Of a DNA stretch of 64,000 bases, positions 10,101 through 43,915 are shown piece by piece (positions within the stretch are counted from its first letter, which is position 1; every line of letters begins with the position of its first letter). Source of the DNA: Octopus bimaculoides. Taxonomy: Eukaryota. The notes under the pieces were generated by a model. The model saw nothing but the letters and a program-made list of their open reading frames with translations. It had not been told where the DNA came from and ran no database searches. Both the position numbers and the translations under genes were made by a program. The stretch lies in NCBI RefSeq assembly GCF_001194135.2, contig NC_068989.1:67119589-67183588 (forward strand), given 5' to 3'.

Positions 10101-10179
10101 TTGAAGGCAATACAAAATCTGATTGATTTCCTGCTTCAACATTAGAAAACTTTCTCTTCCTATCATTATTGTCACACAT
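10101..10179 (-). CDS. POP1: POP1 first coding exon (ATG at 10179; exon 10101-10196 including 17 nt of 5'UTR)
   Basis: Strong acceptor tttgtttgtttcag| at 10197 and donor caa|gtaagt at 10100; MCDNNDRKRKFSNVEAGNQSDFVLPS plus 1 nt gives the phase 1 needed by the next exon; in-frame TAG upstream of the ATG; RKRK is NLS-like. Confidence 0.8.
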
Positions 10180-10439
10180 TTTGATCAGCTATCTATCTGA
10201 AACAAACAAATAATAAAAACAATAATTCGAAATGTGAAAAAAAGTTACTAGAAACAAATAATAATGCAAAAAAAAAAAAAAACTGAACTTTCAAATGAAC
10301 TACTGTCTTCAGCATCAACAACCTGATGGAGGAAGACATATATACAGAGCTGGCTGGATATTTGCGGGTAAACTTCAGCAGGCCATAAACAGAAGTAGTC
10401 CTAACAAAAAGCACACCATGCACTATATTTCAACTTCCT

Positions 10440-10830
10440 TATTTCTCTTTCAGATGTAATGAGAGCATCAACATGGAACATCTCAATTTGATACAGGAAA
10501 TGAAACGGTTCAACATGCTTAAGGTCAACCACAGCAACTCATAGACTGCAAGCTTCTTGAATATAGCAAGATCCTTTATACTTCAGATCAAGAAAGAGCT
10601 GGAGACCTCCAACAAAGCTGTATCATCCGTGGCCTAAAGAAAGAAACATTTACAATAATCAGATGTTGTTAATATGGCTGAAATTGTCCAGTAGGGCAGG
10701 TAAAAATCATTAATGACAACCCCAAAGGGTTGACGAGGACCATCAACAAGCATCTTAAGGTGGAACAGTCTGCTATTACGCTTCAGGGCATGAGGACATC
10801 AACAAGTATTATGTGATGAGAAGAGTTCAG
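10440..10830 (+). mobile_element. Degraded Tc1/mariner transposase 5' fragment
   Basis: Broken frames give KVNHSNS.. and KIINDNPKGLTRTINKHLKVEQSAI, resembling mariner-like HTH regions. Confidence 0.5.
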
Positions 10831-11609
10831 TTCATGAATAGCAAGACCTAGATGTGTGTGATTATGTGACATTCTTCCATCACCACCCCAGCATCATGGA
10901 CATCCATACTTTGAATCCCTCGGACTGCTACATTTGACGTGTCATTGGCAATGGAATGAACGGGTAGGTGTTCCTGCACTCCTCTCGCCCTACGGTTCAC
11001 AGGATTCTTTGAGGGCTGCCATGGTGAGCGAAACCAGCTGATTATTAACATATAATTGCTCCCATAGCCCCGTCAGCACAACTACTGAGGTTGAGAGTGG
11101 TTTTGTTGAATGGTCTATTTCTAGTTGAATACATGCCATTTTGACTGAGAATTTTTTTTTCTACTTTGTTTCTTTGTTTTGTTTTGGAGTGGCCAGATAC
11201 ACCTTGCATAATGCACAAGGGGCTAAACAAGGACAGACAAAGGGATTAAGTTGATTACATCGGCCCCAGTGAGTAACTGGTACTTAATTTATCGACCCTG
11301 AAAGGATGAAAGGCAAAGTCGACCTTAGCAGAGTTTGAACTCAGAACGTAACGGCAAATAAAATACCGCTAAGCATTTCGCCCGGTATGCTAACATTACT
11401 GCCAGCTCGCCGTTTTGTATAATATTTCTGACAGCATTACCAAGAGAATAGTTTAAACCAAGCATGCACAACTCTTTTCAAGAAGCAGACCTCATGAGTC
11501 AGGGCTCATCATTAGGTGGGCCACACTACTAAAAAAAAAAATGGCAATTTTTCGTTTGGTATGCTACTGAAAGACTGCGGGCCGCAGTTTACCCAAGACT
11601 AGTTTAAAC

Positions 11610-11773
11610 CAGTGCTCTGCAACTAGTATACCACGGCACACTGGTGTGCCACAGTGTAACCTGAATATAATTTTTTTCCCTATACTTTTAGTTATATTTT
11701 TAGTTCAGGTGTGCTACCGAATTTTGAAACGAATATAAGTGTACCGCAAGTGAAAAAAGGTTGTAGAGCACTG
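11610..11773. mobile_element. hAT MITE (164 bp)
   Basis: TIR cagtgctctgcaac / gttgtagagcactg; perfect 8-bp TSD GTTTAAAC at 11602-11609 and 11774-11781. Confidence 0.88.
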
Positions 11774-11798
11774 GTTTAAACAGACAGCTCAAAATAAA

Positions 11799-11986
11799 GG
11801 TAATTTTTCAGATTAACACCCGCACGATCTTCACAAGGGTGTTAGGGTGAGGGTTTTAGGGTTAGTTTTAGGGTTGGGTTAGGCTTAGAGGTTACGGTTA
11901 GGGTTTTAGGGTTTGGGTTATGGAATTCCGTCCCTAACCGTAACCCCCTATTGAAGATCGTGCGGGTGTTAATCTGAAAAATTACC
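11799..11986. mobile_element. MITE with 35-bp perfect TIR and internal telomere-like repeats (Merlin-like)
   Basis: ggtaatttttcagattaacacccgcacgatcttca and its exact reverse complement; 8-bp TSD AAAATAAA; interior of degenerate TTAGGG units. Confidence 0.88.
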
Positions 11987-13849
11987 AAAATAAATATCTA
12001 TTTCAGTGCCACTGCTGTTCTATATTAAAGAACCACGAAGTACACCTCACCTCCATCTGTACCAGAAATTATATAATGGAGGAATGTTTATGTAGACAGG
12101 CATATGTATAAACTCATACATAATATATGTTGTGTACGTATAGATATGTGTGTGCTTGTAAAATCCACATGTCTCTATGTACAAGAGTTAGCGACATAGT
12201 TCATTGATAATATTGTAAAAGAAATGTCTAGAGTACTTCAGTCGCTTCCCACTGACCAATGCCACTCACGTGTAACTTGTTTTCACGAACAAAATAGTCC
12301 TTATCTAGTCGAGCGACCACACAGCAGCTACATCTCCTTCAAATAATACCTCTACACAAACGAAGGCTCACACATTGAACGATGTGCATAAAAAGACGGA
12401 ATGGTAACGGCTGGAAAACTTTTTAACCATAGGCCTGTTCAATTACGAATGTATGACCTAAACAAGAAGTTACGTTTCACAACATTAAACAAACAAAAAC
12501 AAGGTGGTTCGTTTTCATAAACTTTAACAAATGTTAAATATAAATAAACAGGAAATAATCGTTGACACCTAAAAATTAAAGCCGATATTGACTTGAAATT
12601 GAGCAATGCTCATCGCTAGCAGGAAGAGAAATAGAGAAAAATGTAAAATAAAATTCTAGAACACATGTTTGAACTCACGTGGTAAAAATGTAGGCTTGAA
12701 ATGAGAACCTTTTGTTGGTAGGGAAAAAAAGTGACAGTCACCGAGTGTGAGAAACCGGTGTCAATCAGCAATTGCTTCCTTTTGTAAAAATGCTTTTCAA
12801 TTGATATATAAATTGATACAAGGATTATTGCTCTAATTGAGCAGATCAATGAGCGAAGGTATTCTAACCATGACCGTCCGTCTTCCTTTTTTTGTTTTTC
12901 CTTCAGACAATATGTTGTATCAAGGATTACATTAACTAATGTATCTGTCCTTTAAGGCAGGCCAGAGGAATAAGAGGCACTTATCCCTCATAAAGTAAAT
13001 GGGGAAAAAAATTAATAAATGGCGAATATAAAAGAATTTTGATAGGCTTGGTGGGAATGTCTATAACCTGGCTTCCTTTTTCTACAAAAAATAAAAACAT
13101 CTCAATAATCAAAACAATATTTTTTTCAACATAAATAGCTAAGAGAAATAACTCAGGGTAATTAGTGGTATGAATATGGACAATAAAGATTAATGAAGGT
13201 ATATTAAATACCATAAATGGTAAAGTCTTGATTTATTGAAATTTCCTTCTCTTCAAGTGGTAATTGTGGCCAACTCTGAATGGGAATGAGAGATAACTTC
13301 AAGAATCAAGAATTCTCTGAAATTAACATGCTGTTAAAGAAACAATTGTCTGTCAGGAGACTGGAGAACAGTATTCAAAAGTCTACACTGGAAGAGATTA
13401 TGATGAAGAACTGTGTATTCCATCCCATGTAGTTGTGACTGAAAATAAAGGTGAGACAAGCTGTCACCAAAAGGTGTAATGGGAAACTTAACGACAATCT
13501 AACGTATTAATTTCTTGATTTACTTATATTAGAACACAGCATCCCCAATTTATGTTTGTTTTTGATATATTTTATTTACATTAGAGACAAGAAAACTTTC
13601 TTTGTGTGTCTTCCAACCAATTGGGAAGTTCGGCTTGACCTTCCATGACTTCTGTCTCATAGCTCATCCACTTAACTTCCCAATATGAGGCAAAGAAAGG
13701 TCATTCTAGCCAGTTATATTGAACTTTTTCACATAGATGAAGATCTCATTTTAGCTCTCTGAACTTTCAGCTGAGTGAACCAAAGTTAAAAACAAGGCTT
13801 TCCTCGCCTCATCATAACTTCAACATAAGAGAACTAATTAGTTCACTCT

Positions 13850-14830
13850 TGTTGAAGGAAGGACAATGTAATAATAGTGTGGTGTTGAGGGGGTGAGTTA
13901 CACATATGGGTTGTGGGAGGAGGAGTACCTAAGTGAAGATGATACAAAACCAAGCAACACCAAGGAGTAGATAGCTAGTGTGGTATCAGTTGAAAAGGAA
14001 GAGAGGAGACAGCTTATCTAACAGCTTAGAGTTAGCACTTGCTGGAGGCTAGACTTTTTTCTGACCCTGAAGAGATGGGACAGTCATTATTATAGAGTTT
14101 ATGCTATGTCAAGGATATATGATTGCTCAGAGAGATCATGAGCTGAGGTGATGCCCACCATTTGTAGCAACACTGAGGGTTGTAGTTACATACTGTTTAT
14201 GTTTAGAAGGTGAAAATGAACAATATGTTTGTGATTACAATAATTGTATGTTGCTGTTGAAGGATACAAAATTTGCTGTAGGCTGTTTTCAAGGTCTCTG
14301 TTCAAGAAATTAGTGTTGGTTTGGCAGGAGGTGCCTAGCTTACATGCAGATGATGCTTGGGTATGGAAAGTCAAGAAGGAATGAAGAGTAGGGTGGTATC
14401 ATCTGCATAGGAGTCTGCATTGTTAAAGGAGATGCTATAGGAAGAAGGGTGTGAGAGAAAAAAAAACAGACCTTGGAAAACAAGTTGATAGAGTGATGGT
14501 CAGTAAGTGTTTTATCAGTACACAAAATGATCATATGATCTAACAGTAAGTCACTGATCCAGGAGATGAAAGACAACAGAGTACAAAGGTGGGTAGATTA
14601 ACAAGAAGTTCACATGCCAAACATGGTCAAATGCTTTGCCAATGTCAAGTACAATAGCACTGATTTTACTAGATTTTTTAAGTTGATGCTTATTTCCAAT
14701 TTCTATGGCATTATAAGGCTCTTAGACAAACCATTTCTGGATATGCTACTGTCTGTAACAGCGAATCTTCTAATATAAACTTCTTTCACATGTAGGATGC
14801 TTAAATGAATATTAAATCAATCCTAGTTGT
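13850..14830 (-). mobile_element. Degraded CR1/L2-group LINE, RT and 3' region
   Basis: Minus strand reads AIVLDIGKAFDHVWH (~14620-14660), WISDLL and YADDTTL (~14385-14410), which are RT motifs; many stops and frameshifts. Confidence 0.75.
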
Positions 14831-15208
14831 TAACTTATACTTTTTTTTATCAACCTGGATGGATGCAAAACTCTTCCCTTGCATTCATCTTTAAAGCTGC
14901 TTGTTGACAAAGTTTCTAAAAAAAACAACTTACACTTTGGTCATCAACATCATCATCATCAATAATCTTAATAAATAAAAGTGTATATGATGTCTGGTGA
15001 ATTTATGGAAAGAAGTCCCATAAAACTCATCAATTTAGTTAAAAATGGAGAAGACAAGTTGTTAGAATATATAAAAGAATAAATAAAAGTGTATGTATGT
15101 CTTCCATTTTTATTCATAATTTTTTTAAAAGTAAGAAGGGTGCTAGTTTCTGACAAAGAAGCAAAAGTTCTATCACTGAAATTTGAATATCAAAAACAAT
15201 AATTATTA

Positions 15209-15643
15209 TGTAGTGGCGCAAAATTATAGCCGCCATTGAGGAAGTACTATTCTGCGCACGTGCAAGGGACTTCACCACCGGAAGCCCCTCGAGTACGCAT
15301 GCATAGTAAAACTAGTACTTAATGAGTTGTTTCACTTCTTAATCCAGTTGAGCGACAGACCTTCTACGTGATAACTTCTTGCTTCTCAACGAAGCACTCT
15401 TCACCACGATGCCTTCGATGGTGATAGCTACTTGCTTCTCTGGCAGGCATCAAGGAAGCTCTTAACTTTCCAATACCAACTACAACTTAATCAACGGCTG
15501 CTAAGCTGAGTGACACAGTATTTTTATAACCAAGCATCATCAATAATAAAACTTATTTTTATTATGTTGTTGAATTGTTCTACTGTTCCTTAAGATATAT
15601 TTATGTTGAAAGGTGATAGAGAGAGACTAAAGTCTCCATTACA
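15209..15643 (+). mobile_element. Probable solo LTR (435 bp)
   Basis: Termini TGTAGTGG...CCATTACA (7/8 inverted match, TG...CA); AATAAA at 15545; CpG-rich; flanks atta/acta as imperfect 4-bp TSD. Confidence 0.55.
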
Positions 15644-15918
15644 ACTATTCAAACTTTTACAGTTATATATCAAACTTTAAGAATGTCTTACATAATTTAT
15701 TTTCTGTCCCACTCAAAGAATTGCTGTTTTTACTTGAAAGCCCCAGATTTTCCAAATTGCCACATAAACATTTACTAACATAACCAAGTGCACCAACTGT
15801 TATTGGTATAAATGTAAATTTATAATCAAGGCAAAGGAACTGCAGGTTTCAAAGCAGTAGTCCATAGATAATCTTCTTGTCCATGTTCACATCTGAAGGG
15901 TAGCGAGCTTCTATGACT

Positions 15919-16930
15919 CAGGTGTTCTCAGCCATTTTTTTTATCTCTGGACCCCTTTTATTATTATTTTATTTTGGTGGACCTCCATAGACATTCAAGG
16001 TAATCTTCCAGTTTTGGGAGGTAAAAAAAGTAAATAAGAATACAAGGGAAATAACTTAACGTCTTACTAGTATTATCCGTACTCTCCCCACCCCACCCGT
16101 TCACGAGCGCGCATTCTTCATATTCGTTCACAGCAAGTTGTTTTACACCTATTACACTAATTTATTTTTGAGCTCGGGTCAAACTCTTTAGTTTGACTGT
16201 TATTTCCCTATACTGGAAGATTACCATAAGTTGTGCAGACGGTACTATGATATTCAATCTCGTGTGTGATTTATATATAAACAGTTAACTTCAATCACGT
16301 GTGTGATTTTATTTATAAACAGCTAAAAAAAAAAAAAAACATTTCAGAGTAGTACGGATAATACTAGTAAGACGTTAAGTTATTTCCCTTGTATTTTATT
16401 TACTTTTTTTACCTCCTGAAACTGGAAGTTTACCGACATTCAATGCTTAAAAACTAGTTGTATTGAAACTTCTTTCAAGATTCATCATCATCATCGTTTA
16501 ACGTCCAGGCTCCAATCTGATCTGGCAGAGTTTCTACAGCTGGATGCCTTTCCTAATGCCAACTACTCTGAGGGTGTAGTGGGTGCTTTTACATGCCAGT
16601 AGCAAGAGGGCAATCAGGCGGTACTGGCAACAGCCATCCTCGAATGGTGTTTTTCATGTGCCACCTGCACAGGAGCCACTCCAGTGGCACTGGCAACAAC
16701 CTTGCTCGAATGTTGTTTTTCCTGTGCCACCAGCAATGGTGCTTCTATTTTCTTTTTAACACATTAACTTGTAAAATGTTAGAGGAAGAAACCTAGTTGT
16801 TTCTTGCAATACATACAACTAAAGCAAAATTTTTTCAAGGACCCTTAAAATACTGTTCTGGATCCCTAATTTATTATTTTGCTGTGTGAACCCCCAACAA
16901 TCTTATATGGTCCCAGGTTGAGAACCACTG
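15919..16930. mobile_element. hAT MITE interrupted by two nested insertions
   Basis: Ends caggtgttctcagcc / ggttgagaaccactg; uninterrupted relative at 36758-37078; contains 15999-16434 and a SINE at ~16483-16735. Confidence 0.65.
15999..16434. mobile_element. MITE with ~85-bp TIR and 9-bp TSD (Merlin- or MULE-like)
   Basis: ggtaatcttccagtttt...agtattatccgtact mirrored at the right end; perfect TSD GACATTCAA at 15990-15998 and 16435-16443. Confidence 0.88.
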
Positions 16931-18065
16931 CTCTACATGACTTCCTTTCTATCCCAAGTAACTATATCAGGCCTGTTACGTTTGCTCTTGGTAGAAGTTT
17001 TTATGGCACCCAGAAATATTTGCCACTCTATTTTTGTCACAGAAATATGTTAAAAAGCCTAAGTAAACACTGTTTAATGATTCCTGTCTCTAAAGAATCT
17101 GATACATCTTTGTGTGTTGTGCAGGGATGTTATGTATTATCCATAATGTGATAGGAAACATTAACCATTTACAACTAATCTAAGGTTCTATTTAGCAAAT
17201 CATTTCAAAATGACATTGTGACCTTTTCCAAACAACCTGCTCTGGTTTCTGATAAGCAACTAGTAGTTTACAACATTTGCCATTAACCCTTTGCTTGTCA
17301 TAGACCATATATTTTCCCCCTCATACCCTATATTATAATTACTGCAATGTTTTCTTTACAGTAGCAATGTATTATTGTAAAACAGTTTCAAATATAATGC
17401 TAATTACAACAATTATAAATATTAAAGAAGTCGCTGACTACATGCTTCCAACCCATCAGGTTTGCATGCTTCAGCACCTTGCCATCGCCGCAGGACTTCG
17501 AGATAAAAAAAATATATATATATATACTAAAAATGAAGAAAATACATACTAAAAATAAGATAAATATATACTAAAAATAAGATAAATATATATAGGAAAA
17601 AAATTCACATGTCGAGCAGAGGTCCGCAATGCCTGTGCTGAGTTTTAGGTCCAGTGAGGCTTGCACAACACCTCATAGACCCTCTCCACTTTATTGACAT
17701 TATCCAAAGACAAACCGGAGCAAGATGTCTGGTGCCAATATGAAAGAAGTAATTTCTAATATACAAACATTTTTTTTTTATATGTGATCAGAATTGTCAC
17801 AGTATGAAATAAACTATCTACATTGTTTATTAGCTATCAGTGCACTGCATCCTTCAGAGGTTCCAGGCTTCCTAAAATTCTTCAACACTACTCTTGATGC
17901 GTCTATGCAGCCTTTCCTCTTTATGACTCTCTTAATGCTTACTTTTCATGTTTTACTCTGTGTACTGAGCATATACTTCAAGCTTTCATTGCTGCTTTAC
18001 TTAATTTATATGCTTGTTTTCTGACCCCTCTTTTAACCTTTTCTGATGATTTGTAGTACACCTTG

Positions 18066-18454
18066 TTGTGTGTTGGTACTCTGTCGCTTACGACATCGAG
18101 GGTTCCAGTTTGATCCGATCAACGGAACAGCCTGCTCGTGAAATTAACGTTCAAGTGGCTGAGCACTCCACAGACACGTGTACCCTTAACGTAGTTCTCG
18201 GGGATATTCAGCGTGACACAGTGTGACAAGGCTGACCCTTTGAATTACAGGCACAACAGAAACAGGAAGTAAGAGTGAGAGAAAGTTGTGGTGAAAGAGT
18301 ACAGCAGGGTTCGCCACCATCCCCTGCCAGAGCCTCGTGGAGCTTTAGGTGTTTTCGCTCAATAAACACTCACAACGCCCGGTCTGGGAATCGAAACCGC
18401 AATCCTATGACTGCGAGTCCGCTACCCTAACAACTGGGCCATTGCGCCTCCACA
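18066..18454 (-). mobile_element. Full-length tRNA(Arg)-like SINE with TSD
   Basis: Head GTGGAGGCGCAATGGCCCAGT.GTTAGGG with A and B boxes, (ACA)n tail, TSD gtacaccttg at 18056-18065 and 18455-18464. Confidence 0.9.
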
Positions 18455-19340
18455 GTACACCTTGATACTATATACAATAAGCTCAATATTATTTTAATAT
18501 ATATTTAATGTGATGAGTTCAATAACTTTGATTAATCAAAATTATACCTGTATCAGATAAATATTATTGCATATATTTTTCCCCAATCATTCTTTTAAGC
18601 CATTGTAGCAGATTCAAAAGCAAAGTGCTGGACAACCATTTGAATGCCATGTTGAGATCACTATAGTTTCACATGATCAGCCAATTAACCGACCAGTCAG
18701 CATTGAGCCATTACATGATTTGACTTTCTAGAACCTTCTAATGCAGTGGTTCTCTAACTGGGGTCTGCAGTCCTCTAGGAGACTGCAAAGGGATGCTGAA
18801 GTATCATGAAAATGGGGTGGCTTGAGATAGTTAAGTTTTAAAATTTCAAGACTTTCAATTTTTCGCATGCAATCATCCTTTTTGACGTTGGCCTCAAAAA
18901 CCCACATCGCTCCTACACACTCATTTGCTAATCCCACTTGTACAGCAAGTGTGATTAGCTGATAGAAAATATGTGGGTATTCAGTAGCATTTAAACTCAG
19001 AACATAAAGACAAATGAAATGCTGTTAAGCATCAAATCTTGACACAAAGCCAGTAAGTTTGAGGGACGAGATAAGTCAATTACATCAATCCAAGTGCTTA
19101 CTTGGTACTTATTTTACCAACCTCAAAAGGATGAAAAGCAAAATCAACCTCTGCTGAATTTGAACTCAGAATATAAAGACAGACAAAATGCCCCTAAGTA
19201 TTTTTCCCAGTATGCTAACAATTATTCCAGCTCACCATACTTAATAATAAGACCTAAACATGCTCAGAATTGTCATTGTCATATATATAATGATATATAT
19301 ATATTGGTATGTAATGATACATATATACAGTGGTATGTAA

Positions 19341-19342
<2 letters not shown>

Positions 19343-19392
<50 letters not shown>
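19343..19392. repeat. (AT)n microsatellite
   Basis: About 25 AT units; many similar AT, CA and TATC tracts across the window (e.g. 22981-23057 (TATC)n, 22014-22051 poly-T). Confidence 0.95.
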
Positions 19393-19396
<4 letters not shown>

Positions 19397-21588
19397 AACA
19401 GGTGAGTGTTGGGCAACAGGAAAAGGCATATGGCTGCAGAAAATCCACTCCTGTCCAACCCATGCAAGCATGGAAAAGTTGATGTTAAAATGATGATGAT
19501 GGTGGTGGTGATAAATGTATGCATGTTTATATGTGTGTATGTATATGCATATAATTTTGATTTTTAGAACGTAACAGTAGCTTTGGAAAATTTATGGTGC
19601 ACTGGCAGTTAACCATATACTAGGTCACAATAAGTGGTTCATGCAGCTAATACTATGATTGTCATTATTTCTTTTTTTCTTCTTTCCTCCTCCTCCTCCT
19701 TTTCTTCTGTTCCCTCCTCCTCTCTAAAGAAAGGTCACAATATATCTTTTAAGTGACACACTCAGTTTTTTTTTGTTTTATTGCTGTTGTTATTTATTTG
19801 GAGGATAAGAAGTAAAATGATATTCTGTTTCTTTTTGAAACCTGATTCCAACTGATAAAGAATCTATGCAAATGTTAGGACCATTTCTCAAATTGCCAGT
19901 TTTTTCCTACAACTGAAGTGTTTGAGTTTATACTACACAAATATAATTCCAATTTGAATTTCTTTTTATGCACCTAAAGGCACAGGCAGAGTTGTATGGT
20001 TCAGAAGTTTGCTTCCCAACTACATGGTGTCTGGTTCTGTTCCATTGTGTGGTACCTTGGGTTGATGTGTTCTACTATAGCCCTATATCATATATGTTTA
20101 GTATTAACTGTCAGAAGAAAAAAAAGAGATCTTCATACCATAATAGAGACTAATGTTATTTTACTTTAGTTGAGTCAGCCTCTAGCTACAAGCAAACAGA
20201 CCGGGCGTTGTGAGTGTTTATTGAGTGAAAACACCTAAAGCTCCACGAGGCTTGGCAGGGGATGGTGGTGAACCCTGCTGTACTCTTCCACCACAACTTT
20301 CTCTCACTCTTACTTCCTGTTTCTGTTGTGCCTGTAATTCAAAGGGTCAGCCTTGTCACACTGAATATCCCCGAGAACTACGTTAAAGGTACACGTGTCT
20401 GTGGAGTGCTCAGCCGCTTGCACATTAATTTCACAAGCAGGCTGTTCTGTTGATCGGATCAACTGGAACCCTCTATGTCGTAAGCAACGGAGTGCCAACA
20501 ACAACAGCTTGATCAGGACTGACCCACGGCTAAACAACAACACCAACAATGATTACAAATATTTTATTTTGGACAAGGAATCAGTGCTTGAGCTAGATAT
20601 GAACTTAAAATTTTATGACTGTCTCAGTAACTAGTATTGTTTAGATAAAAGGTAAGCCTCAATGTGGTTCCTTGACTTAGTAGAAATAGCAGCCAAATCT
20701 TTGTTAGTTTATATCCTATCATATTAAAAAAAAAAGAAAAAGAATACACTGGACAATATTGTATATGGTCACAAAAAGAGTGGATGGTCACAACAGCTGG
20801 AACATTTTTGATCATAAATCTGTTGAATCAGGGTTGACCTGGGGCTTAACAACAATCATAATCGCCAAGTTGAAAGTAAATTTTTCTTTAATTCTTTTTG
20901 ATACCAGTCCACCTGAAACCACCTCTGTTACTAAGATACAAATGACCAGTTTGAAAGGGATCAAAATTCAAACTTTCCATCAATATTTCAGGTTAATTTT
21001 AGTGGCCAGCTAGCAGAATCATTAGCACTTCGAGTGAAATACTTAGTGGCATTTCACCTTTCTTCACATTCTGAGTTCAAATCCCACCAAGGTTGACGTT
21101 TCCTTTTATCCTTTCAGGTTGATAAAATAAGTACCATTTGAACACTGGGGTCAATGTAATTGACTTATCCCTTCCCCCAAAATTGCTGGCCTAGTGCCAA
21201 AATTTGAAATCAATATTTCATGCTTAATAGCAACAAAGTTTTTTACTAAATTTTTCATTAATTTCAATATCTTTCAACAGAAATCATCATCATTATTAAC
21301 ATCATTTAACATCCATGTTCCTTTCTGGCTTGGGTTGGACAGTTTGACAGGATCTGATGGGTCTAAGGTCTACATCATGCTTCAGTGTCTTCTTTTGGCA
21401 TGGTTTCTACAATTGGATGTCCTTCATAATACATGTACTATGCGTTTTTTTCATGCCACTGGCACAGGTGAAGTGACCATGCAGCCTGCAAGAAGAGGCT
21501 TTTTGCTATAGAGGAGCTGCATGACTAAGAGTTAATGGTTTCTTACATTGGTACAGAGCTTGAAATCTTTTCGAAGAATGAGAAAAAA

Positions 21589-22011: not shown

Positions 22012-22053
<42 letters not shown>

Positions 22054-22220
22054 AATATTGTATGAATTCCCAGGTGTAGAACACAAATTTGCAAAAGTTT
22101 TCTGAAAATTTCAAAAAATAAAAACGTTATGAGGGATAAAATAAAAAATAAGTGTTATGAGGGATAAAAAAATAAATAAATAAAAGCGTTATGAGGGATG
22201 CTTAAACCAGAATTCCACTG
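21589..22220. mobile_element. hAT-like non-autonomous DNA transposon
   Basis: TIR gtggaattcgggtttaagcacccc / gggatgcttaaaccagaattccac; longer subterminal mirror symmetry; gttatgagggat repeated 3 times near the right end. No clear TSD. Confidence 0.6.
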
Positions 22221-32886: not shown

Positions 32887-33071
32887 CTAGTACAAACTAC
32901 TACCAAGATATCAAGAGGAATAATTTATCTCTCGAGTTATTTATTTGATTCCATCTATCTGATATCTGCAAGGTTACAAAATTTCTACTCCTTATTCTTG
33001 CCAAGCACTTCAGTCTTCCTCCTCACCCCACCTCTCTCGTACCACATCCTGGAAATATGCAACAGTGTGTC

Positions 33072-33232
33072 CAGTGCCGGATTTAGGACAACTGAGGCCC
33101 TGTGCTAGTTAAGTTATAAGGTCCCTTACTTAGACAGGGCCCCTTACATGGACGGCCCCGTTGACTAGGGGCCCCTGGTCATTGAGGTCCTGTGCTTAAG
33201 TACACCTAAGCACAATGGTAAATCCAGCACTG
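33072..33232. mobile_element. hAT MITE (161 bp)
   Basis: TIR cagtgccggattt / aaatccagcactg; perfect 8-bp TSD AGTGTGTC. Confidence 0.88.
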
Positions 33233-33419
33233 AGTGTGTCCCATTCCAGTGAAGGACAATCTCTGATTCTCTCCTATCATTCAATTCCACTTACTTACAA
33301 AATTACAAACTTCCTAGAAGCAGCCATTAACTACAACCTTCTCTAACCCCTTGTGTCTTTTTCTTTACTTCATGGCTACTGGAGACACTTTCTCCTGTAT
33401 CTATCACTCATCAGTGGGC

Positions 33420-33900
33420 CCTTGCCCTTGAGAAATATGGAGAAAGCAATATTGTTGCATTCGCTATTAGCAAAAAAATGTCTGACATGTGAATTTCATG
33501 GCAAAACTGCCTGCTAAGGCCTCCTTTCACCTCTCATCACTGCGATTGGTGGCTTCCTATCAGAACATATCATTAAGGTATGTGCTGATAGCTAGGTCTT
33601 TCTCTCTCTCTCTCTCTTTGCTTATTTTTTATCTGTTTATTCAAACCAACCAACCATTCATCTATCCAACCATCCATTCAGCCAACCAACCATCCAACCA
33701 ACATGCTTCACACCACACCACTGACACAATGAAATCTTGATAAATTCCTCTAATGGAGTCTTGCCAATACTATCTCCTTCTACAACACAACAAAAGCAAT
33801 TGCCATTCAAATCAAGAAACATTATCTCACTCCTACCCTACATCATGCAGGAACAGCACTCTCCTAGAACCCTCAAGGTCACTAGCTACACACCCAATAA
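33420..33900 (+). mobile_element. Highly degraded CR1/L2-like RT fragment
   Basis: Broken frames give IGGFLSEHIIKV and INSSNGVLPILSP, resembling RT W.SSFLS.R..KV and GVPQGS.LSP. Confidence 0.4.
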
Positions 33901-33918
33901 AAGTACATGTACACTATA

Positions 33919-34154
33919 CAGGGTGGCCCAAAAGTAAGTTTACAGTTATCATGTAGGCACTTTAAATTTCTTGTAAAACATTTTATTACATTTAAATTTC
34001 TATCTTACAAACTGAAAAAGGAGCTTGACAAAATTAACTAAATTAGCATAGAATAATGGGTTCATATCTTTTTTATAATTAAGATCTAAACTGTTAATAT
34101 ATGAATGCGAAAGAGATAGTTGAATAACTGTAAGCCTACTTTTGGGCTACTTTG
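33919..34154. mobile_element. Tc1/mariner MITE with TA TSD
   Basis: ta|cagggtggcccaaaagtaagtttacagtt ... aactgtaagcctacttttgggctactttg|ta. Confidence 0.75.
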
Positions 34155-34560
34155 TATAGATAAAATGGCATCATAAACACCAGCCTTCCTCTTTTGGGTC
34201 AGAAAGCACTTCAGCCCCCACCACTCTCTCTCAACAACAGCTAATACATTCTAGAAAGTTCAGTTGAGATTCACAATGAGGTATTCTTCTACATCTATAT
34301 ATATATTCCTTTATTTTTGTTTCAGTCATTTGACTGTGGCCATGTTGGAGCAAATCAACCCCAGGACTTTTCTTTTTAAGCCTGGTACTTATTCTATCAA
34401 TCTCATTTGCCAAACTGCTAAGTTATAGGGACATAAACACATCAATACTGGTTGTCAAGCAATGATGGGAGGACAAACAAAAACACACACACACACATAT
34501 ACGATGGGCTTCTTTCAGTTTCCATTTACTAAATCCATTCAGAAGGTTTTGGTTGGCCTT

Positions 34561-34737
34561 ACTGACAGCATCTCTGTACATGGCTTGTACAGCTCTCACT
34601 AACCATTCATCTATCCCTAGTTTCTGCAATGACCACCAGATAAGGGATTGGGGGACCCTGTCAAAGGCTTTCTCCATGTCAATGAAAGCCAGGTACGGAG
34701 GTTTATCTTTGGCTAGGTATTTCTCCTGAGGCTGTCT
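34561..34737 (-). mobile_element. RTE-type LINE reverse transcriptase fragment embedded in a SINE
   Basis: QEKYLAKDKPPYLAFIDMEKAFDRVPQSLIWWSLQKLGIDEWLVRAVQAMYRDAVS is the RT F.D.EKAFDRV region; SINE sequence on both sides. Confidence 0.85.
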
Positions 34738-35386
34738 CACAAGGCATTGGTTGGCTCAAGGCTATAGTAGAAGACACTTGCCCAAAAGTGCCATGCAGTG
34801 GGACTAAACCCAGAGCAATGTAGTTAGGAAGCAAGCTTCTTACCAACATTTTTTCATTACTGTGAAGAAAAAATATTGGAATTTTTAAAACCTTAAATTA
34901 AGCTTTAAGATATACATTTTAACACTGAAAATTTGATTTATTTTTGTATTAAATAGATACTTGAGAAATAGTGATAGTTTTTTAACTTTTTATATTAAAC
35001 TATAAGAAATGAGTGATTATGGAGAAACAAGAAAGAAATTGTGAATGTGGATTAACATAAGAAAATATACATTTTCAGTTGTTCATGAAACATCTAGGTT
35101 TTCTCATAACACTTGAGTTGTCAGCCCATTTTAATAATAATAATGATGATTATAATAATAATAAAATAATCCTTTCACAAGGCCTGAAATTTTGTGAACG
35201 TAGATAGTCAATTCAGTTGATCTCAGTTGATACTTACTGTATTGATCTTGAAAGGATGAAAGGCAAAGTTGACCTCAGCAGAATTTGAACTCAGAAGAAA
35301 TGTCACTAAGCATTTTGCCTTGATGCACTAATGATTCTATCGGTTTGCTGCCTTCATAATAATAATCCTTTCTTCTATAGACACAA

Positions 35387-35429
35387 TAAACGGCAGGTAA
35401 GTAACTATGACTCTCTTAAGGTAGCCAAA
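35387..35429 (+). pseudogene. 28S rRNA-derived fragment (43 bp)
   Basis: 35400-35429 AGTAACTATGACTCTCTTAAGGTAGCCAAA matches the conserved eukaryotic LSU rRNA segment as recalled (30 nt); TAAACGGC upstream extends the match. Confidence 0.85.
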
Positions 35430-36073
35430 AATAAAAATAATAGTAATAATAATACGGTTTCAAATTTTTGGTACAAAACCAGCAATTTTAGGAGAGGCAA
35501 CATGGTCAGTATTGACTCCTAGGGGTCTATGTATCTATCCAAAAAATCAGTAAACAACCTTTAACAACTTGAACTATTAACAAACTGAATTTGGAAGAGT
35601 TTTGTAATTTAAGGCTAAATTCACAAATTTGCATCCAAATATTGCTGCAATAACTATATTCACCAAACACATATTTCAACTATATAAATATGTGACTGAA
35701 TTGTTCTTTATCAATTGCATTAAGTATTCTCATTAAATTTCTTTTAATATTTCTAATAATAGTAATGATACAAAAAAACAAAGGAATTATTGTTTTTAAA
35801 TCAATAAATGTTTTATTAATTATACTTCTTAATTTAATTTTAGAAATTACATGATAGGTGTTAAGTTATCAAAGGTTCTATAATATATATATATATACAA
35901 GAAGTTTGCTGACCCCCAGTTTAGAATATGACCTTCAGCAGAGTTTCTCCTGAAGAAATTGGTAGAATCCATAGTGTTAGATGCTGTTCTAGATTGATGA
36001 TTGTTTAATATATTCGGTTATTAATATTCCTGTCTTGTCTACTCTTTTATAATTACATGTATTATCATTTTAG

Positions 36074-36179
36074 CCAAGCTGTAGTGGTTGATAAAACTAT
36101 GTATGTCTCAGGACAGCTTGGTCTTAATCCTACCACCATGGAGTTTCCTTCCAACAATGCTGCTGAACAAGCTGACCAG
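36074..36179 (+). CDS. RIDA: RidA exon 2
   Basis: tttag|C ... cag|gtatgt; QAVVVDKTMYVSGQLGLNPTTMEFPSNNAAEQADQ. Confidence 0.96.
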
Positions 36180-36757
36180 GTATGTTTTCTTATTCTAGCA
36201 TGGGTTAGATGAGAATATATTATTATTGTTGTTGTTGTTTTACAGCTGGTTTTCCTTCTTGTCTCTAATCCATGTCTGTTTTTCAAGGAAGAGATGTCTT
36301 ATTTCATTCTTACACAAAGGCACAAACCCAGTGGGTGATTTGTTGGCAGGAGAAATGATAACATCTCATACTGATATCTACCAAACTGATAACAATCTAT
36401 GCGATGCATGCAGAACAGTGAGAATCAAAACAATAATATATCTATTAATTCTCCATAATATATTTTTCATTATACAAGTTGAATTTTTCAGCCCAAAGTT
36501 TACAGTCAAAACGTTTTAGGTTGACTTCTACACCAAGACAACTTTAGAGAATCAAAAATTCCATGTTAAATGCAGTAGGATTTGTAAAGATAGTGATACT
36601 GTTTAAATATTTGCACATGTTTACACTATATTTTATGTCGACTTATATACTGGAAAATATGGTACATTCTGATAAATTTTAATGTGAATATACTGATCAC
36701 TGTTGTTTTACATCATCAGAAATCATGCCCTGCCTTTTAATACAATATCATCTAAAG

Positions 36758-37078
36758 CAGGGATTCTCAACCATTTTTTCTCTATAGACCCCTTCGATTA
36801 CTATTTAATTCTGGTGGATCCCCCATAGTCATTTGATGTTTTATAGAAACTTCTTTTAAAATTCCTATTTTGTTTTTCATACAATTTGTGTAGCTTGAAC
36901 TATGTAAAATATTAAAGAAAGAAACCTAGCTGTTTCTTCCAATACATACATCTAAAGCAAAATTTTTTCAGGGGCCCTTAAAATACTATTGTGGATCCCC
37001 AATTTATCATTATAAGGACCCCCACCGAATCTAGTATGGACCCTCAGTGGCTATGTAGACCTCGGTTGAGAACCACTG
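36758..37078. mobile_element. hAT MITE (uninterrupted copy)
   Basis: cagggattctcaacc / ggttgagaaccactg; imperfect TSD atctaaag/atctaaga. Confidence 0.75.
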
Positions 37079-37234
37079 ATCTAAGAGCTGTAATTCATCA
37101 TGACATATTTTGCTTATATCTTATATTTATCATAGCATTTATATTGTATTCTGTAATTATCAATTTTCAATCTTAATGAGAATCCAATGAAAATACTTAA
37201 GATTTCAATTTGGCAATTTCATGATTCTTTACAG

Positions 37235-37289
37235 GCTCTCAAAAATATGTCTGCAATTCTCAAAGAGGCTGGGGCTTCCCTAAACAATG
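37235..37289 (+). CDS. RIDA: RidA exon 3
   Basis: ttctttacag|GCT ... G|gtaagt; ALKNMSAILKEAGASLNN(V). Confidence 0.96.
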
Positions 37290-38268
37290 GTAAGTGAATT
37301 ATTTTCCTTTTTTTTTTAATCAGTAAAGGTGCATGACCTGGTAGTTTGGGTGTTGCATTCACAGTATTAAGATTGTGGTTTCAGTTCCTAGACTGGCTGG
37401 CATGTTGAGTTCTTGAGCAAAAGGTTTCCTATAACTTTGCATCAGTCCACTCAGCTGTAAATGACTCTCAGTAACAGCTGGGAAGTTAACCTTGCAATAG
37501 ACTGGCATTCTGTGCTGGAGTTGTAATCCTAGTCATTTATACATCATGAAAACCAAATTGAGTTCTGGCCTTTGCGAATCTTAGGCACATGACTACTAGG
37601 CTAAGTCTACTTAATTAGTTTCTTCATCATCATCATCGTCATCATTTAGCATCTATTTTCCATGCTAACATGGGTAAGACAGCTTGACTGGAGCTGGTAA
37701 ACTGGAGAGCTGCACTGGGCTTCAACCTGTTTTGACTTGGTTTCTACAGCTAGATGCCCTTCCTAATGCTAACCACACCACAGATTGTACTGAGTGCCTT
37801 TTATGTGTCACCAGCACGGGTGCCTTCTACGTGCCACTGGCATCGGTGCCTTTTAGGTGTCACCAGCACGGCTGCCTTTTATGTGTTTATGGCATGGGTA
37901 CCTTTTATGTGCCACCAGCACTAGCCACAACTACAATTAGCTTCACATGTCTTCTCAAGCACAGCAAGTCGCATGAAATATCAATGTGAATATAAACTAC
38001 GCAGATTAACAAAACAGTTGTCTTTACATGCAACCACCGATTTAACATTGTGATATCAATGACTGATCCTCATTTTACGTAAAATAGTAGCTGAACGGAG
38101 AATATAAAGGGACGTAACTCTAGTATTTTGTGCTTTATTTATTCCGCCATCCACCGTCCTATTTATACATTATAGAGCTTTTTGATTTCTATTTTATTTA
38201 TATATTATAATGAAAATAATGTGCATTTCATCCAAAACTTTACGATGTAATTCTCTTTATTATTTCAG

Positions 38269-38337
38269 TTGTGAAGACCACAGTCCTCTTGGCTGACATT
38301 AACGACTTCCAAGCAGTTAATGAAATCTACTCAAAAT
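38269..38337 (+). CDS. RIDA: RidA exon 4
   Basis: tatttcag|TT ... T|gtaagt; VKTTVLLADINDFQAVNEIYSK. Confidence 0.96.
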
Positions 38338-39360
38338 GTAAGTATATCAAAGACTCTTCTACTGTTTTAAACCAGTGGTTATTAATATGGGTGGTAGCAC
38401 CTCTTCGAGGGTATAGTAAGCTGACAAGGAGGTAACAAATGTCAAGGGATGTATTGGCTGTGAGTTTTCTTAAAAATAAAATATATAAACCAGGTGCAAT
38501 TCATTGTCATCAACAAAATTTAACATCTGTTTTCCATGCCAGCATGGGTTGGACAGGAAACTAGCAAGGTCGTGGGCCGCACCAGGTTCCATAGTCTGTT
38601 TTGGCTTGGTTTCTACGGTTGGATGCTCTTTCTAACATCAACCACTCCACAGAGTGTACTGGGTGCTTTTTATGTGGCACCAGCACCAGTGCTTTTTTCA
38701 TGGGACCAGCACCTACACCAATGCTCTTTATGCAGCGCCTTGGTTTTAGGGTTCCAATTCTGTTGCGGTGGGCAGGTCTTCTCAAGTGCAGCTATGCACC
38801 ACATATCTCAGTCTCCCGTCATCTCCTTTTTAAGGTTCAGTGTTTTGAGACTGGCCTTCAATACTTCGTCCTATATCTTCCTGGGTCTCCCTCTTTCACA
38901 ACTTCCCTCTACTGGCTTTCTTTAATAATTTCCATGAAAATTTAATATAAAAGATATTTATTCCATGCAGATATCTAAAAAGAAGAACATACTATTATAC
39001 TATAAGAAAATATAGATTGTAAGGCACAGTGCAAAATTAACATCTGCTTGATTAACATAATTTGTTGGGATTTTTTCTTGGGGGTACAAACAATGGAAAG
39101 GGTTACTTGTGAAATGCCATTGAATGAGAGAGGGCACTGAACTACAGAAAGTTGAGAACTACTGTTTTAGACTATGGCAGCCAAAAGAGTCATCAAGTCA
39201 AATCTCAGTTATTGTGTTGTGTTATGTTCCTGCTCCAATACTTAATTCATGCTACTTTAGCAGGGCTTGCGGGGACGAAATCCCTGCTACTGGTGTTGGG
39301 GGAAAATGTGGGGAGGTGAATAAGAGATACTACAATACTGTTATGAAATTTCTGTTTTAG

Positions 39361-39419
39361 ATTTTGCTGGAACTGACTTTCCTGCCAGAGCAGCTTATCA
39401 AGTTGGTAATTTACCAAAG
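39361..39419 (+). CDS. RIDA: RidA exon 5 (catalytic Arg)
   Basis: ctgttttag|AT ... aag|gtaaat; (Y)FAGTDFPARAAYQVGNLPK with the PAR motif. Confidence 0.96.
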
Positions 39420-41116
39420 GTAAATTTTTGATTTTTATTTGAAATTGATACCTGGAGAGATTATTATTCTTTTAAATTCTTGTCTATATTTAATTGTAAT
39501 TAAAATAACACCCAGAATCCATGGAATCTTTACACTGCTTTGCAACCAATGCTGGTGTGTTTACATTCCTGTAACTTAGCAGTTTGGCAAAAAAACACCA
39601 ATAGAATAAGTACCAGGCTGGGGTTGATTCATTCAACTAAAATTCTTCAAGGTGGTACCCCAGCATGGCCACAGTCTAATGTCTGAAACAAGTAAAAGAT
39701 AAAAGATTTAAAAGTAGGATGTGATTCAAAGGATAATTGATTACTATTTCTTACAATTCAAATGACCATAGCAAGACTTCTGCATCCATTCATCAGATAA
39801 TGTTATGGTTGATGGGACATCATTCATTAGCTCAGTTAATCCAGTATAAACTGATTTGTAGCAGGCAGTAGCTGAAATAGAGCAGATGTAAGCTGGGTCA
39901 CAGCTGCATATATTTAAAGTATGTTAGTTATCTGTGGAATAGATGTTAGCTAGGACACGACTTTAACTCTATTTAGCTCTAAGTCTTAAATTAGCACTGT
40001 AAAATGCAGTCACCAGTATAAAAGATAATATTGATAGTAGTTATATGATCAGTAGTACTAAACAAATATTTCCCTGGTTGTGGATTCTAATGTAAATAAT
40101 TGGCTGGAATGTTACTGGCACTCCTAACCACAATCTTAGTGAATAAAAATTCTTTTCTGCACAAGGCACAAAATTTTGGGGGAAGGGGCCAGTTGATTAT
40201 ATCCACCTCCAGTATGCAACTGGTACTTAATTTATTGACCCTGAAAGGATGAAAGGCAAAGTCAACCTCGGCAGAATATGAATCCAGAACATTAAAGACA
40301 GGTGAAATACCGCTAAGCATTTCACCCGGTGTGCTAATGCTTCTGCCAGCTTGCTACCTTCTTAGTGAATAAATATTCATCATCATCATCGTTTAACGTC
40401 CGCTTTCCATGCTAGCATGGGTTGGACGATTTGACTGAGGGCTGGTGAACCAGATGGCTACACCAGGCTCCAATCTGATTTGGCAGAGTTTCTACAGCTG
40501 GATGCCTTCCTAACGCCAACCACTCCGAGAGTGTAGTGGGTGCTTTTACGTGCCACGGGCATGAAGGCCAGTCAGGTGGTACTGGCAACGGCCACACTCA
40601 AAACGGTGTATTTTACGTGCCACCTGCACAGGAGCCAGTCCAGCGGCACTGGCAACGATCTTGGTCGAATGTCTTTACACGTGCCAGGAAAGCAAATATT
40701 AAATATATTAAAGCAAGACATAATGATAGCTAAAAGAATATTTTAAAAAAGTACAAAAATCATAGAATTTCCTACATGTACAAAAAAAAAAAATATGCTT
40801 GAACTTGTTAAATATCTCAATCAATAGCAAAGACCATTGATTATTGAATATAACGTTTGATCTGCATCACGTTTGTTTGTTTTTTTAGGTGCAGATGTGG
40901 CTGTGTGGTAAGAAGCTTGGTTCCTAACTACATAGTTCCAAGTCCAGTCCCACTGCATGGCTCCTTGGCAAGTGTCTTTTACTATAGCCTTGGGCTGACC
41001 AAAGCCTTGTGAGTGGNNNNNNNNNNNNNNNNNNNNNNNNNNNNNNNNNNNNNNNNNNNNNNNNNNNNNNNNNNNNNNNNNNNNNNNNNNNNNNNNNNNN
41101 NNNNNNNNNNNNNNNN

Positions 41117-42101
41117 ACAAAGTTTGAATTGTTTCTAAAGGAATTTTTCTCCATTCTTCAGCTAAAGCACTCTCCAATTCTTGTTGTGATGATGGTGGAG
41201 GATATCAACTCCTTACTTGTGTGGATTGGTGCATTATCATCCTGAAAGATTGCATTTCCCTCCAGAAGTAGTTCTGCAACCATAAGATGAATTTGATCAG
41301 ATAAATTGCTTAAATAGTCTTGACTATTAATTCTGCCATGAAGGGAAACCATTGGGCTGGCAGATTTCCAATTTCCAAGATATAGTCCCCCAAATCATCA
41401 CAGATCCTCCTTCATGTTTAACAGTTGGAAGAAGGCAGTCTGGGTCAAATGCTTATTTTGGTTGTCTCTGCATGTATACTTAGCCGGTGGTCAGAAATAA
41501 GGTAAAGGATGATGATGATGACTCGTCCAAGAAAATAACATTCTTCCACTGCTTTAGGGACCAATTCTGTAGGTTTTTACTTCACTCTAAACACTTTGCA
41601 ACGTTTGTTTTTGAAAGTAGTGGTTTTCTGATTGTAGCACTCCCGTGAAATCCAGCTTTGTGCAGCTTCCAGCAAACAGTTTTTGTGGAAACTGGGTTCT
41701 TGGGGTGGTCATTAAGCTCTGCAGTAATTTTGGGAGCTTTCCGACAGTCCCTATCTGAAAGTTTTGTTTCGACGCGGAGGTTTATCCCTCTTTCTCGAAG
41801 GCTGTCATTACTTTCGAGACAGTACTTCTTGATACACCAAACATTTCAGCTGTTTTCGTTAGGCTAGTGCCTGCCATACGAGCACCAACAATTTGACCTC
41901 TTTCAAAGTACAATAGATCTGTCATTTTAATGAATTTTAATTACCTTTTTCTGATGATATCTGAAAAGAAACAGCAATTTTAACAAAACATATTAAGCAA
42001 CACTAATAATAAATCAAAAAACATAAAAATAAACAAGCTTTTGACTGTTTTATAGATATTTCAAAATTATGATGCTATGATGCTATTTTGTCCAACCCCT
42101 G
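41117..42101 (-). mobile_element. Degraded Tc1 transposon (DD34E type)
   Basis: TIR cagggg ttggacaaaata at 42101; MTDLLYFERGQIVGARMAGTSLTKTAEMFGVSRSTVSKVM and IFQDDNAPIH; runs into an N gap. Confidence 0.85.
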
Positions 42102-43186
42102 TGTGTATATATATATATTATTTATTTACATACACACACACACACGTGTGTATGTGTCTTCGTGTTTGTCCCCACCACCACTTGACAACTAGTGTTGGTG
42201 TATTTATGTCCCCATAATTTAGTAGTTTGACAAAAACATTAAGCACCGGGGTCAACTCATTCAACTAAAAGGTTTTGAAGGCGGTGCCCCAGCATGGCTG
42301 CAGTCTAATGACTGAAACAAGAAAAAGATAAAAGCACAAGATCAATCTTTGTAAAGGTCGTTGTTGCAGTCATTTGAATCAATGCCTGTATATTACGGAT
42401 ATTTAGTCAGTCTAGCGCTGTCCCAAACCAAGTTGCCTCTTATGTAGTCACTTGTCCTTTTTTAGAAATGACAGTAAATCTCATAGATCGCACATTCCAT
42501 CGTCTTAACAAAGGACACATTGGATAATGTAATTATGTAGTCCTTGGTTCACTATGCTGTGTGTGTGTGTGTGTGTGAGAGAGAGACGGACGGATGATGG
42601 TCTCCATTGAATTACCTTTGATCAAAGGTCTGCTCAATCAGGGCTGACCCAGGGTTGAACAACAGTGAGGTAATATGTGGTGGAGTATGGTAGGGAAAAG
42701 GGAAAAGGGAAGGGATTGGTGACGGTAGTGGGAGGGGTTATTGAAAAGAAAGGGACAGGGAGAAACAGTGGGTGAGGGTAGTGGGAGAAGGAAAGGCTAA
42801 AGGGCATCCTCCTGTTTATTGATGGAACAGGTTTATGTAACGTGTTTGTTGCTCGCTGGACTTGTTATGGCAGTGAGAGGGAGAGAGTAAGGGAGAATCT
42901 ACGTATTTCAGGGGAGAGAATCACTTCTTATTTTTTTTTACTTCTAAGTTTTTAAGTTGGAATTCTTTTATTCTTTTACTCGTTGAAGTCATTTGACTGC
43001 GGCCATGCTGGAGCATCGCTTTGAAGTGTTTTTGTCGAACAATTCAACGCCAGGACTTATTTTTAAGCCTAGTACTTATTTTATTGGTCTCTTTGACAAA
43101 CTGCTAAGTTACGGGGGCATATATACACACTAACACCAGTTGTCAAGTGATGATGGTGGGGTGAACAAACACAAACACAGACACAA

Positions 43187-43223
<37 letters not shown>

Positions 43224-43861
43224 TACATGCATGACAGGCTTTCATTTTCCGTCTACCAAATCCACTCAAAAGGCTTTGGTCAGCCCAAGGATATAGTAGA
43301 AGACACTTGCCCAAGGTACTACACAGTGGGACTGAACCTGGAACCATGTGGCTGGGAAGCAAGCTTCTTAAAACAGCCATCCCTGCGCCTGGTTTGGTTT
43401 TTTTTTTCTCTTTATGGAAGGCATGAAAAGGGAAAAGCAGCCATGTTTTTTCATAAGATCTTTTATTATTACCAAAATATCTATGTATGGTTCCATTTTG
43501 GCTTTATTAGATTTATATAATATTGTTGTATTTTAGAATAGTCATTTTACCTATAAAAATACACACTTGTTTTACTTCTATATTATTATTATTATGAGAC
43601 AACTAGTTAATTAATTAACCAATTAACTAAATTGGTTGATTGATTAACTCATTCAATCAGTTTGTCAGTCTTTTCTTTGCCTTTAGCACCCTCATCAGCA
43701 GTTTGCCTTCTTGTGCCAAAGATATATAAAGCCCTTTAAAAACCATCTGTTAATATTTAGTCAGTGCTGTATCTAATTTTCCTTTGCTAACTCTAGTAAT
43801 TGAATCTTAGGGTAATTTTTTTTTCTTCTTTATTCTCTGTTTGCTTTCTTTTTTATTACAG

Positions 43862-43915
43862 CTTGCACGTGTTGAGATAGAGGCTATCGCTGTGTTAGCT
43901 AACAGTCAGTTGTAA
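43862..43915 (+). CDS. RIDA: RidA exon 6 (stop)
   Basis: Long pyrimidine tract ending ttattacag|CTT; LARVEIEAIAVLANSQL-TAA. Joined CDS is 408 nt (135 aa) with all phases consistent. Confidence 0.96.
   Translation, partial: LARVEIEAIAVLANSQL

Follow-up and report, generated by a model that had tools for sequence, protein, structure and literature searches.

In Octopus bimaculoides, POP1 and RIDA are transcribed divergently from neighboring positions; we give a probability of roughly 0.7 to the reading that this locus is the ortholog of the divergent POP1-RIDA gene pair of vertebrates, with its adjacency kept and its two promoters now separate. The window (the whole 64-kb stretch of DNA that was analyzed) is 100% identical to O. 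bimaculoides CM046609.1 (GCA_001194135.2) at about positions 67,119,589 to 67,183,588, so the original prediction, which spoke of a probable octopus, was right about the source. POP1 runs leftward and RIDA runs rightward, with 15,726 bp from start codon to start codon. The gene identities, orientation, and coordinates predicted earlier also stand: the ATG exon of POP1 lies exactly at 10179-10101 and RIDA lies at 25906-43915. The pair is probably ancestral to molluscs and vertebrates, and its distribution is patchy rather than bilaterian-wide.

RIDA has six coding exons on the plus strand (25906-25970, starting with the ATG at 25906; 36074-36179; 37235-37289; 38269-38337; 39361-39419; and 43862-43915, whose TAA stop ends at 43915), which together encode 135 amino acids. 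The protein is 99% identical to that of O. sinensis, 88% identical to that of Argonauta, and 59 to 67% identical to animal RIDA proteins; a full-length PF01042 (Ribonuc_L-PSP) domain spans residues 12 to 129 (E value, 1.1e-40). Coding exon 5 holds FPARAAYQV, the active-site arginine motif of the RidA subfamily, recognized here by sequence alone; we take human RIDA to have the same FPARAAYQV, aligned with the octopus motif, and the invariant arginine is presumably Arg105 of Salmonella enterica RidA, which sets RidA apart from other Rid subfamilies. As judged from these features, the gene at 25906-43915 encodes a member of the RidA subfamily of the YjgF/YER057c/UK114 family, with predicted imine deaminase (2-iminobutanoate/2-iminopropanoate deaminase) activity. 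Its exon boundaries, after residues 21, 57, 75, 98, and 119, are common to octopus, Lottia, and Lemur, and these shared intron positions support orthology.

For POP1, our model comprises six coding exons on the minus strand with canonical ag/gt splice sites, encoding 502 amino acids within the window; the model aligns over 100% of its length, at 100% identity, with the annotated O. bimaculoides POP1 (P0179; 832 amino acids). Coding exon 1 (10101-10179, with the ATG at 10179; 79 nt, phase 1) reads MCDNNDRKRKFSNVEAGNQSDFVLPS, followed by gtaagt, and matches P0179 residues 1 to 27 with 100% identity. It is followed by coding exon 2 (8431-8615), whose matches carry the POP1_N domain (PF06978), exon 3 (6228-6470), which holds the POP1_N core motif (WLETH.WHAKRF), exon 4 (5468-5555), which also matches P0179, exon 5 (3610-4377; 768 nt), and exon 6 (2858-3001), the last one inside the window. 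The seventh and final coding exon (residues ∼503 to 832) lies 4.3 to 5.3 kb past the left end of the window. All matches to the N-terminal POP1 exons of the window (58 of 58) carry PF06978, and P0179 itself has the three domains that define POP1: PF06978, PF08170 (POPLD), and PF22770 (POP1_C).

The spacer between the two start codons (10180-25905; 15,726 bp) is filled with copies of short interspersed nuclear elements (SINEs), fragments of long interspersed nuclear elements (LINEs), and microsatellites, and at least 30% of it is repeated elsewhere in the window. Stop-free segments of ≥56 amino acids gave no Pfam match, and neither an Rfam family nor a tRNA was found; the NCBI annotation shows no gene in the 10 kb upstream of POP1 in O. 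bimaculoides or in the 10 kb upstream of RIDA in O. sinensis. The earlier claim that no gene lies between POP1 and RIDA thus holds in each of these searches.

We compared the neighborhoods of RIDA or POP1 orthologs across species. In Lottia gigantea, POP1 (minus strand) and RIDA (plus strand) are immediate neighbors with 1.8 kb between their coding sequences; in the chiton Liolophura sinensis, they are head-to-head at 5.6 kb; and in Argonauta hians, POP1 starts at 6,727,259 (minus strand) and RIDA at 6,746,555 (plus strand), 19.3 kb apart. Two open reading frames (ORFs) in the Argonauta spacer had been called as genes; we rejected both, one (188 amino acids) being a LINE reverse transcriptase fragment and the other (103 amino acids) having neither a start methionine nor a Pfam match. 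Lemur catta has head-to-head POP1 and RIDA neighbors with 1.8 kb between coding sequences. At every positive locus examined, POP1 is on the minus strand and RIDA is on the plus strand. In human, the POP1 TSS (transcription start site; 98,117,293, plus strand) and the RIDA TSS (98,117,171, minus strand) are 122 bp apart, and the two are catalogued as a divergently paired gene (PMC12672016, supplementary file 6); ridA-pop1 synteny in vertebrates has been described as well (PMC7311433). The octopus arrangement is therefore the human one, as had been proposed, and two nonparalogous genes are immediate neighbors in at least two distant phyla (Mollusca, with Octopus, Argonauta, Lottia, and Liolophura; Chordata, with Lemur and human).

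In the other species whose loci we examined, the pair was not found. A tblastn search with five POP1 proteins placed POP1 solely in the five positive loci. In Lineus (Nemertea), a RabGAP gene lies upstream of RIDA and no POP1 was detected within 10 kb; in Tachypleus (Chelicerata), the nearest called upstream gene, ∼9.8 kb from RIDA, is ADAMTS-like, again with no POP1 within 10 kb. POP1 is not beside RIDA in the cnidarians Nematostella and Pocillopora, where other head-to-head partners lie less than 400 bp from RIDA: a proline-rich 454-amino-acid protein in Nematostella and a 336-amino-acid multipass membrane protein in Pocillopora. We considered whether these partners might be POP1, but they are similar neither to POP1 nor to each other. 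In a published survey of 64 species, conservation of the UK114-POP1 pair was recorded for no more than five, all of them vertebrates (PMC2871058, supplement). The term "bilaterian-wide" used in the original prediction therefore says more than these data support: the genes are not adjacent in the nemertean and the horseshoe crab, nor in the two cnidarian outgroups.

Where POP1 transcription starts bears on whether the octopus genes still share a promoter. The full Argonauta spacer (19,295 bp) was rebuilt and compared with positions 10180-25905 of the window; just two collinear conserved blocks emerged, among them block A (12501-12743, minus strand), which is 70% identical to Argonauta over 244 bp (E value, 1e-17) and unique in the window. 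Block A is the sole POP1-proximal sequence conserved between Octopus and Argonauta; it lies 372 to 607 bp upstream of the POP1 ATG in Argonauta and 2.3 kb from it in Octopus. Its conserved motifs are CACCGG...CGGTGA and CCACGTGAGTT, an E-box overlapping a splice donor. On the POP1 sense strand, the best-conserved part of the block ends in CCAC/GTGAGTT (the slash marks the predicted splice junction), the same in Argonauta; this is a consensus donor, with its G at 12678, and no ATG occurs in the 140 nt upstream of it. We therefore annotate block A as a putative POP1 core promoter plus noncoding exon 1, whose last base would be 12679. The canonical E-box CACGTG (12679-12684, minus strand) overlaps the putative donor in both octopods; it may be a binding site of the MYC/USF type, as would suit a gene for ribosome biogenesis, or simply a by-product of the donor sequence.

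Downstream of this donor, an acceptor can be placed just ahead of the coding region. The sequence leading up to the POP1 ATG is tttgtttgtttcag; an acceptor-like AG stands 17 nt before the ATG, so that a putative 5′-untranslated-region (5′-UTR) intron would span 10197-12678 (2,482 nt; donor GTGAGT at 12678, acceptor tttgtttcag ending at 10197). A pyrimidine tract with an AG precedes the POP1 ATG in all five species (Octopus, 17 nt; Argonauta, 20 nt; Lottia, 30 nt; chiton, 1 nt; lemur, 2 nt). Primate POP1 can be placed in the same scheme: an ATG exon 1.8 kb from RIDA in lemur, together with human TSSs 122 bp apart, implies a noncoding exon 1 and a 5′-UTR intron. Such an intron, suspected in the original prediction, is thus probably ancestral. 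In octopus, POP1 transcription would start at ∼12.7 to 12.8 kb and run through a short noncoding exon 1 and a 2.5-kb 5′-UTR intron to the ATG exon (10101-10179), which is probably exon 2 of the transcript; the predicted junction of 12679 to 10196 reads ...TTTTTACCAC/ATAGATAGCTGATCAAAATG. We think this layout likely: a noncoding POP1 exon 1 ending at 12679, an intron 1 of 2,482 nt, and a separate POP1 promoter that lies ∼13 kb from RIDA. A POP1 start ∼13 kb from the RIDA start leaves no common core promoter, and octopus POP1 and RIDA probably no longer share one. TSSs within ∼1 kb of each other, as a bidirectional promoter requires, were not found here: the start codons alone are 15,726 bp apart, the TSSs being placed by conservation.

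The original prediction had put a shared promoter at 25.5 to 25.9 kb, and the competing model built on it holds that a single bidirectional promoter there also drives POP1, with the noncoding POP1 exon 1 beside RIDA and a repeat-filled first intron of ∼15.5 kb. We regard this as rather unlikely. It would account for the acceptor-like tract and AG ahead of the POP1 ATG (17 nt in Octopus and 20 nt in Argonauta), and mammalian POP1 does have such a noncoding exon beside RIDA; the minus strand has donor-like GTAAGC and GTATGT (∼25.58 and ∼25.89 kb), and the CpG observed/expected ratio is ∼0.9 to 1.0 at 25.1 to 25.9 kb, versus a window mean of 0.37. However, this CpG richness comes largely from SINE copies, and like patches occur elsewhere, including 11.9 to 12.9 kb. 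We had at one point taken the 5′ end of RIDA to be the only CpG-undepleted region of the window, but a finer scan revealed ∼12 patches, of which several coincide with SINE copies and another covers 11.9 to 12.9 kb. Upstream of RIDA, moreover, conservation between Octopus and Argonauta stops 38 bp before the ATG (it starts at 25868), and an old tRNA-derived SINE copy (25640-25790, minus strand; 115 to 265 bp upstream of the RIDA ATG) occupies part of the proposed promoter; this copy is in the same place in O. sinensis and is repeated in the window. Block A and its conserved donor, by contrast, are found on the POP1 side in either species, at a distance from the start codon of 2.3 kb (Octopus) or 0.4 kb (Argonauta). 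The likely TSS at 12.7 to 12.8 kb thus comes close to the result that had been named as refuting the original proposal, a POP1 TSS near 10.2 kb rather than ∼25.7 kb.

Several points weigh against the reading of an ancestral pair with separated promoters. The pair is missing in two of the three non-vertebrate bilaterian phyla sampled and in both cnidarians, and the non-vertebrate bilaterian sample comprises just those three phyla (molluscs, a nemertean, and a chelicerate). The TSSs of both POP1 and RIDA are placed from sequence. Weaker conservation runs ∼170 nt beyond the proposed donor, and block A could be a regulatory element of another type. Patches without CpG depletion are present at 11.9 to 12.9 kb and at 24.7 to 26.0 kb, as well as at SINE copies elsewhere; since they mark both candidate promoters and the SINE copies alike, CpG content cannot separate the promoter models.

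The spacer also holds a conserved noncoding element, element B (22275-22625), which is 94 to 100% identical to O. sinensis, against a background of ∼90% for noncoding DNA. Its identity between the two Octopus species exceeds that of RIDA exon 1, it is unique in the window, and its core (22361-22436) is 77% identical in Argonauta. Neither block A nor element B has a detectable counterpart in Lottia, the chiton, or lemur. Element B contains five fully conserved WGATAR (GATA) motifs; the enrichment is modest (five sites are reached in 2.2% of sliding windows and in 41 of 5,000 shuffles), and we treat it as a mere hint. From its conservation, element B is a candidate distal regulatory element, and a candidate for sharing by both genes; it may act as an enhancer or, alternatively, belong to an unannotated RNA as one of its exons.

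How old the pairing is and why it persists are separate matters. POP1-RIDA adjacency recurs in vertebrates and in three mollusc classes. For two named genes among ∼2 × 10^4 to 3 × 10^4, we estimate the chance of random head-to-head adjacency at ∼10^-5 to 10^-4 per genome, and descent from a pair that already existed in the protostome-deuterostome ancestor or earlier, with repeated losses since, is in our judgment far more likely than convergence. A separate origin of the arrangement in molluscs and in vertebrates would fit its patchy distribution, with the pair absent from the sampled nemertean, chelicerate, and cnidarians, but it would require that rare event in the same orientation more than once and would leave as coincidence the position of the POP1 5′-UTR acceptor just ahead of the ATG, which lemur and molluscs have in common; we consider it very improbable. 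An origin before the protostome-deuterostome split, as originally proposed, is accordingly the most economical reading of the pair in Lottia, the chiton, Argonauta, Octopus, and vertebrates.

Persistence is harder to interpret. In genomes with short spacers, such as human (122 bp), one bidirectional promoter can drive both POP1 and RIDA; in octopods, adjacency and orientation would have been kept while transposon insertions widened the spacer ∼100-fold, perhaps with some continuing constraint on the pair, for example, via element B at 22.3 to 22.6 kb. The alternative is that an ancestral pair was kept simply because no breakpoint fell in the spacer, with no present cis-regulatory or functional constraint. 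This is a serious possibility, although we hold it to be somewhat short of even: the promoters appear to be separate, on either side of a spacer that has grown to 15.7 to 19.3 kb; Lineus, Tachypleus, and the cnidarians have lost the pair; and chance survival is expected of many ancestral adjacencies (background discussed by Irimia et al. 2012, PMC3514665). Against it stand the retention of both adjacency and orientation in three mollusc classes and vertebrates, the conservation of element B among octopods, which exceeds that of RIDA exon 1, the interaction of the POP1 and RIDA products in human, and the fact that 5′-5′ pairs are the orientation class conserved most strongly (PMC3514665).

Among known systems, the closest is human POP1-RIDA on 8q22: the same two orthologs are arranged 5′-5′ without an intervening gene, RIDA is likewise split into six coding exons, and the POP1 acceptor lies just upstream of the ATG; the human TSSs are 122 bp apart, as in a classic bidirectional promoter, whereas the octopus start codons are 15.7 kb apart and the inferred octopus TSSs are ∼13 kb apart across a spacer filled with SINEs and LINEs. 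The octopus locus is a mollusc extension of a well-known class, the conserved 5′-5′ microsyntenic pairs. Like the conserved ancestral microsyntenic pairs (CAMPs) of Irimia et al. (2012, PMC3514665), it joins unrelated neighbors that have stayed together in distant metazoan phyla, and does so in the 5′-5′ orientation, the one conserved preferentially; unlike them, its spacer does not have the short-intergenic signature that was linked there to bidirectional promoters. The HSPD1-HSPE1 (HSP60/HSP10) pair is also head-to-head, has products that act together physically, and has been conserved for very long (PMC3514665), but it is present in nearly all holozoans and fungi studied, whereas POP1-RIDA is patchy and so far confined to molluscs and vertebrates.

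Other features of the window concern its assembly and repeats. A gap of Ns at 41017-41116 falls in RIDA intron 5 (39420-43861), 1.6 kb past exon 5 and 2.7 kb ahead of exon 6. Its flanks are collinear with O. sinensis (40726-41016 corresponds to 37791-38074 of the O. sinensis locus, and 43025-43753 corresponds to 38231-38950), but ∼2 kb around it (41017-43024) is missing from O. sinensis, which has just 157 bp there; a Tc1-type transposase fragment (HTH_Tnp_Tc3_2; 41585-41845, minus strand) sits beside the gap. On this alignment, 41017-43024 is a lineage-specific insertion or deletion in intron 5. The gap leaves the RIDA coding sequence intact: the junction of exons 5 and 6 is in phase 0, and the full-length product agrees with the O. 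sinensis and Argonauta orthologs. The gap is also irrelevant to the POP1-RIDA pairing. RIDA intron 1 measures 10.1 kb in the window versus ∼16 kb in O. sinensis and holds a reverse transcriptase (RVT_1) fragment at 34426-34755 (minus strand). Two further N gaps, at 5923-6002 and 1752-2689, are both intronic in POP1. The latter abuts and truncates a fragment of a Pif1 helicase 2B domain in the last POP1 intron (PF21530; 1567-1749, plus strand; E value, 2e-14), which presumably derives from a Helitron.

Downstream of RIDA, three long stop-free segments (118 to 154 amino acids) at 56497-57824 (plus strand), including ...NRPDIVVWDRGAKVCIIIEVSC..., have no Pfam match and are probably the tail of a non-long-terminal-repeat (non-LTR) retroelement. 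The last exon of an annexin gene (62021-62149, minus strand; ...GDCSGDYKKVLLSLIGE) matches, with 91% protein identity, the annexin gene downstream of Argonauta RIDA, so that a tail-to-tail RIDA-annexin order is common to octopods; in lemur, the downstream neighbor of RIDA is ERICH5-like, not an annexin.

The original prediction viewed the pair as coupling a subunit of tRNA and rRNA processing to a metabolite-repair enzyme. That description names the two products but is incomplete, since RIDA (HRSP12) is already known to bind POP1: it is described as the adaptor between YTHDF2 and POP1 through which RNase P/MRP comes to cleave RNAs marked with N6-methyladenosine (m6A) (PMC7156397), and POP1, RIDA, and YTHDF2 have been coimmunoprecipitated (PMC11391272). 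The YTHDF2-HRSP12-RNase P/MRP decay pathway (Park et al. 2019, as reviewed in PMC7156397; used in PMC11391272) thus involves exactly both proteins of the pair, but it has been demonstrated in human cells only. In full-text literature searches, we found no paper that ties the RIDA-POP1 interaction to genomic adjacency. One could propose that the linkage has been held since the bilaterian ancestor by the partnership of the products, with RIDA as the adaptor delivering RNAs to RNase P/MRP through POP1, and that octopods keep coregulation over this 13-kb distance through distal elements serving both genes, element B among them. On this view, the "moonlighting" role of RIDA in RNA decay would be more than 550 million years old and not a vertebrate novelty; we offer this as a speculation to which we give low odds.

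The practical value of the finding is modest, because the pair is already catalogued in vertebrates and its class is well described. Deeply conserved head-to-head pairs of unrelated genes are nevertheless rare markers of regulatory or functional coupling, and the octopus locus is a natural experiment: set against the ∼0.1-kb bidirectional promoter of human, its spacer of 13 to 16 kb raises the question of whether coexpression survives promoter separation. That the pair has survived in molluscs, even in the heavily rearranged genome of the octopus, suggests that the partnership of RIDA with RNase P/MRP may be ancient, a hypothesis open to testing.

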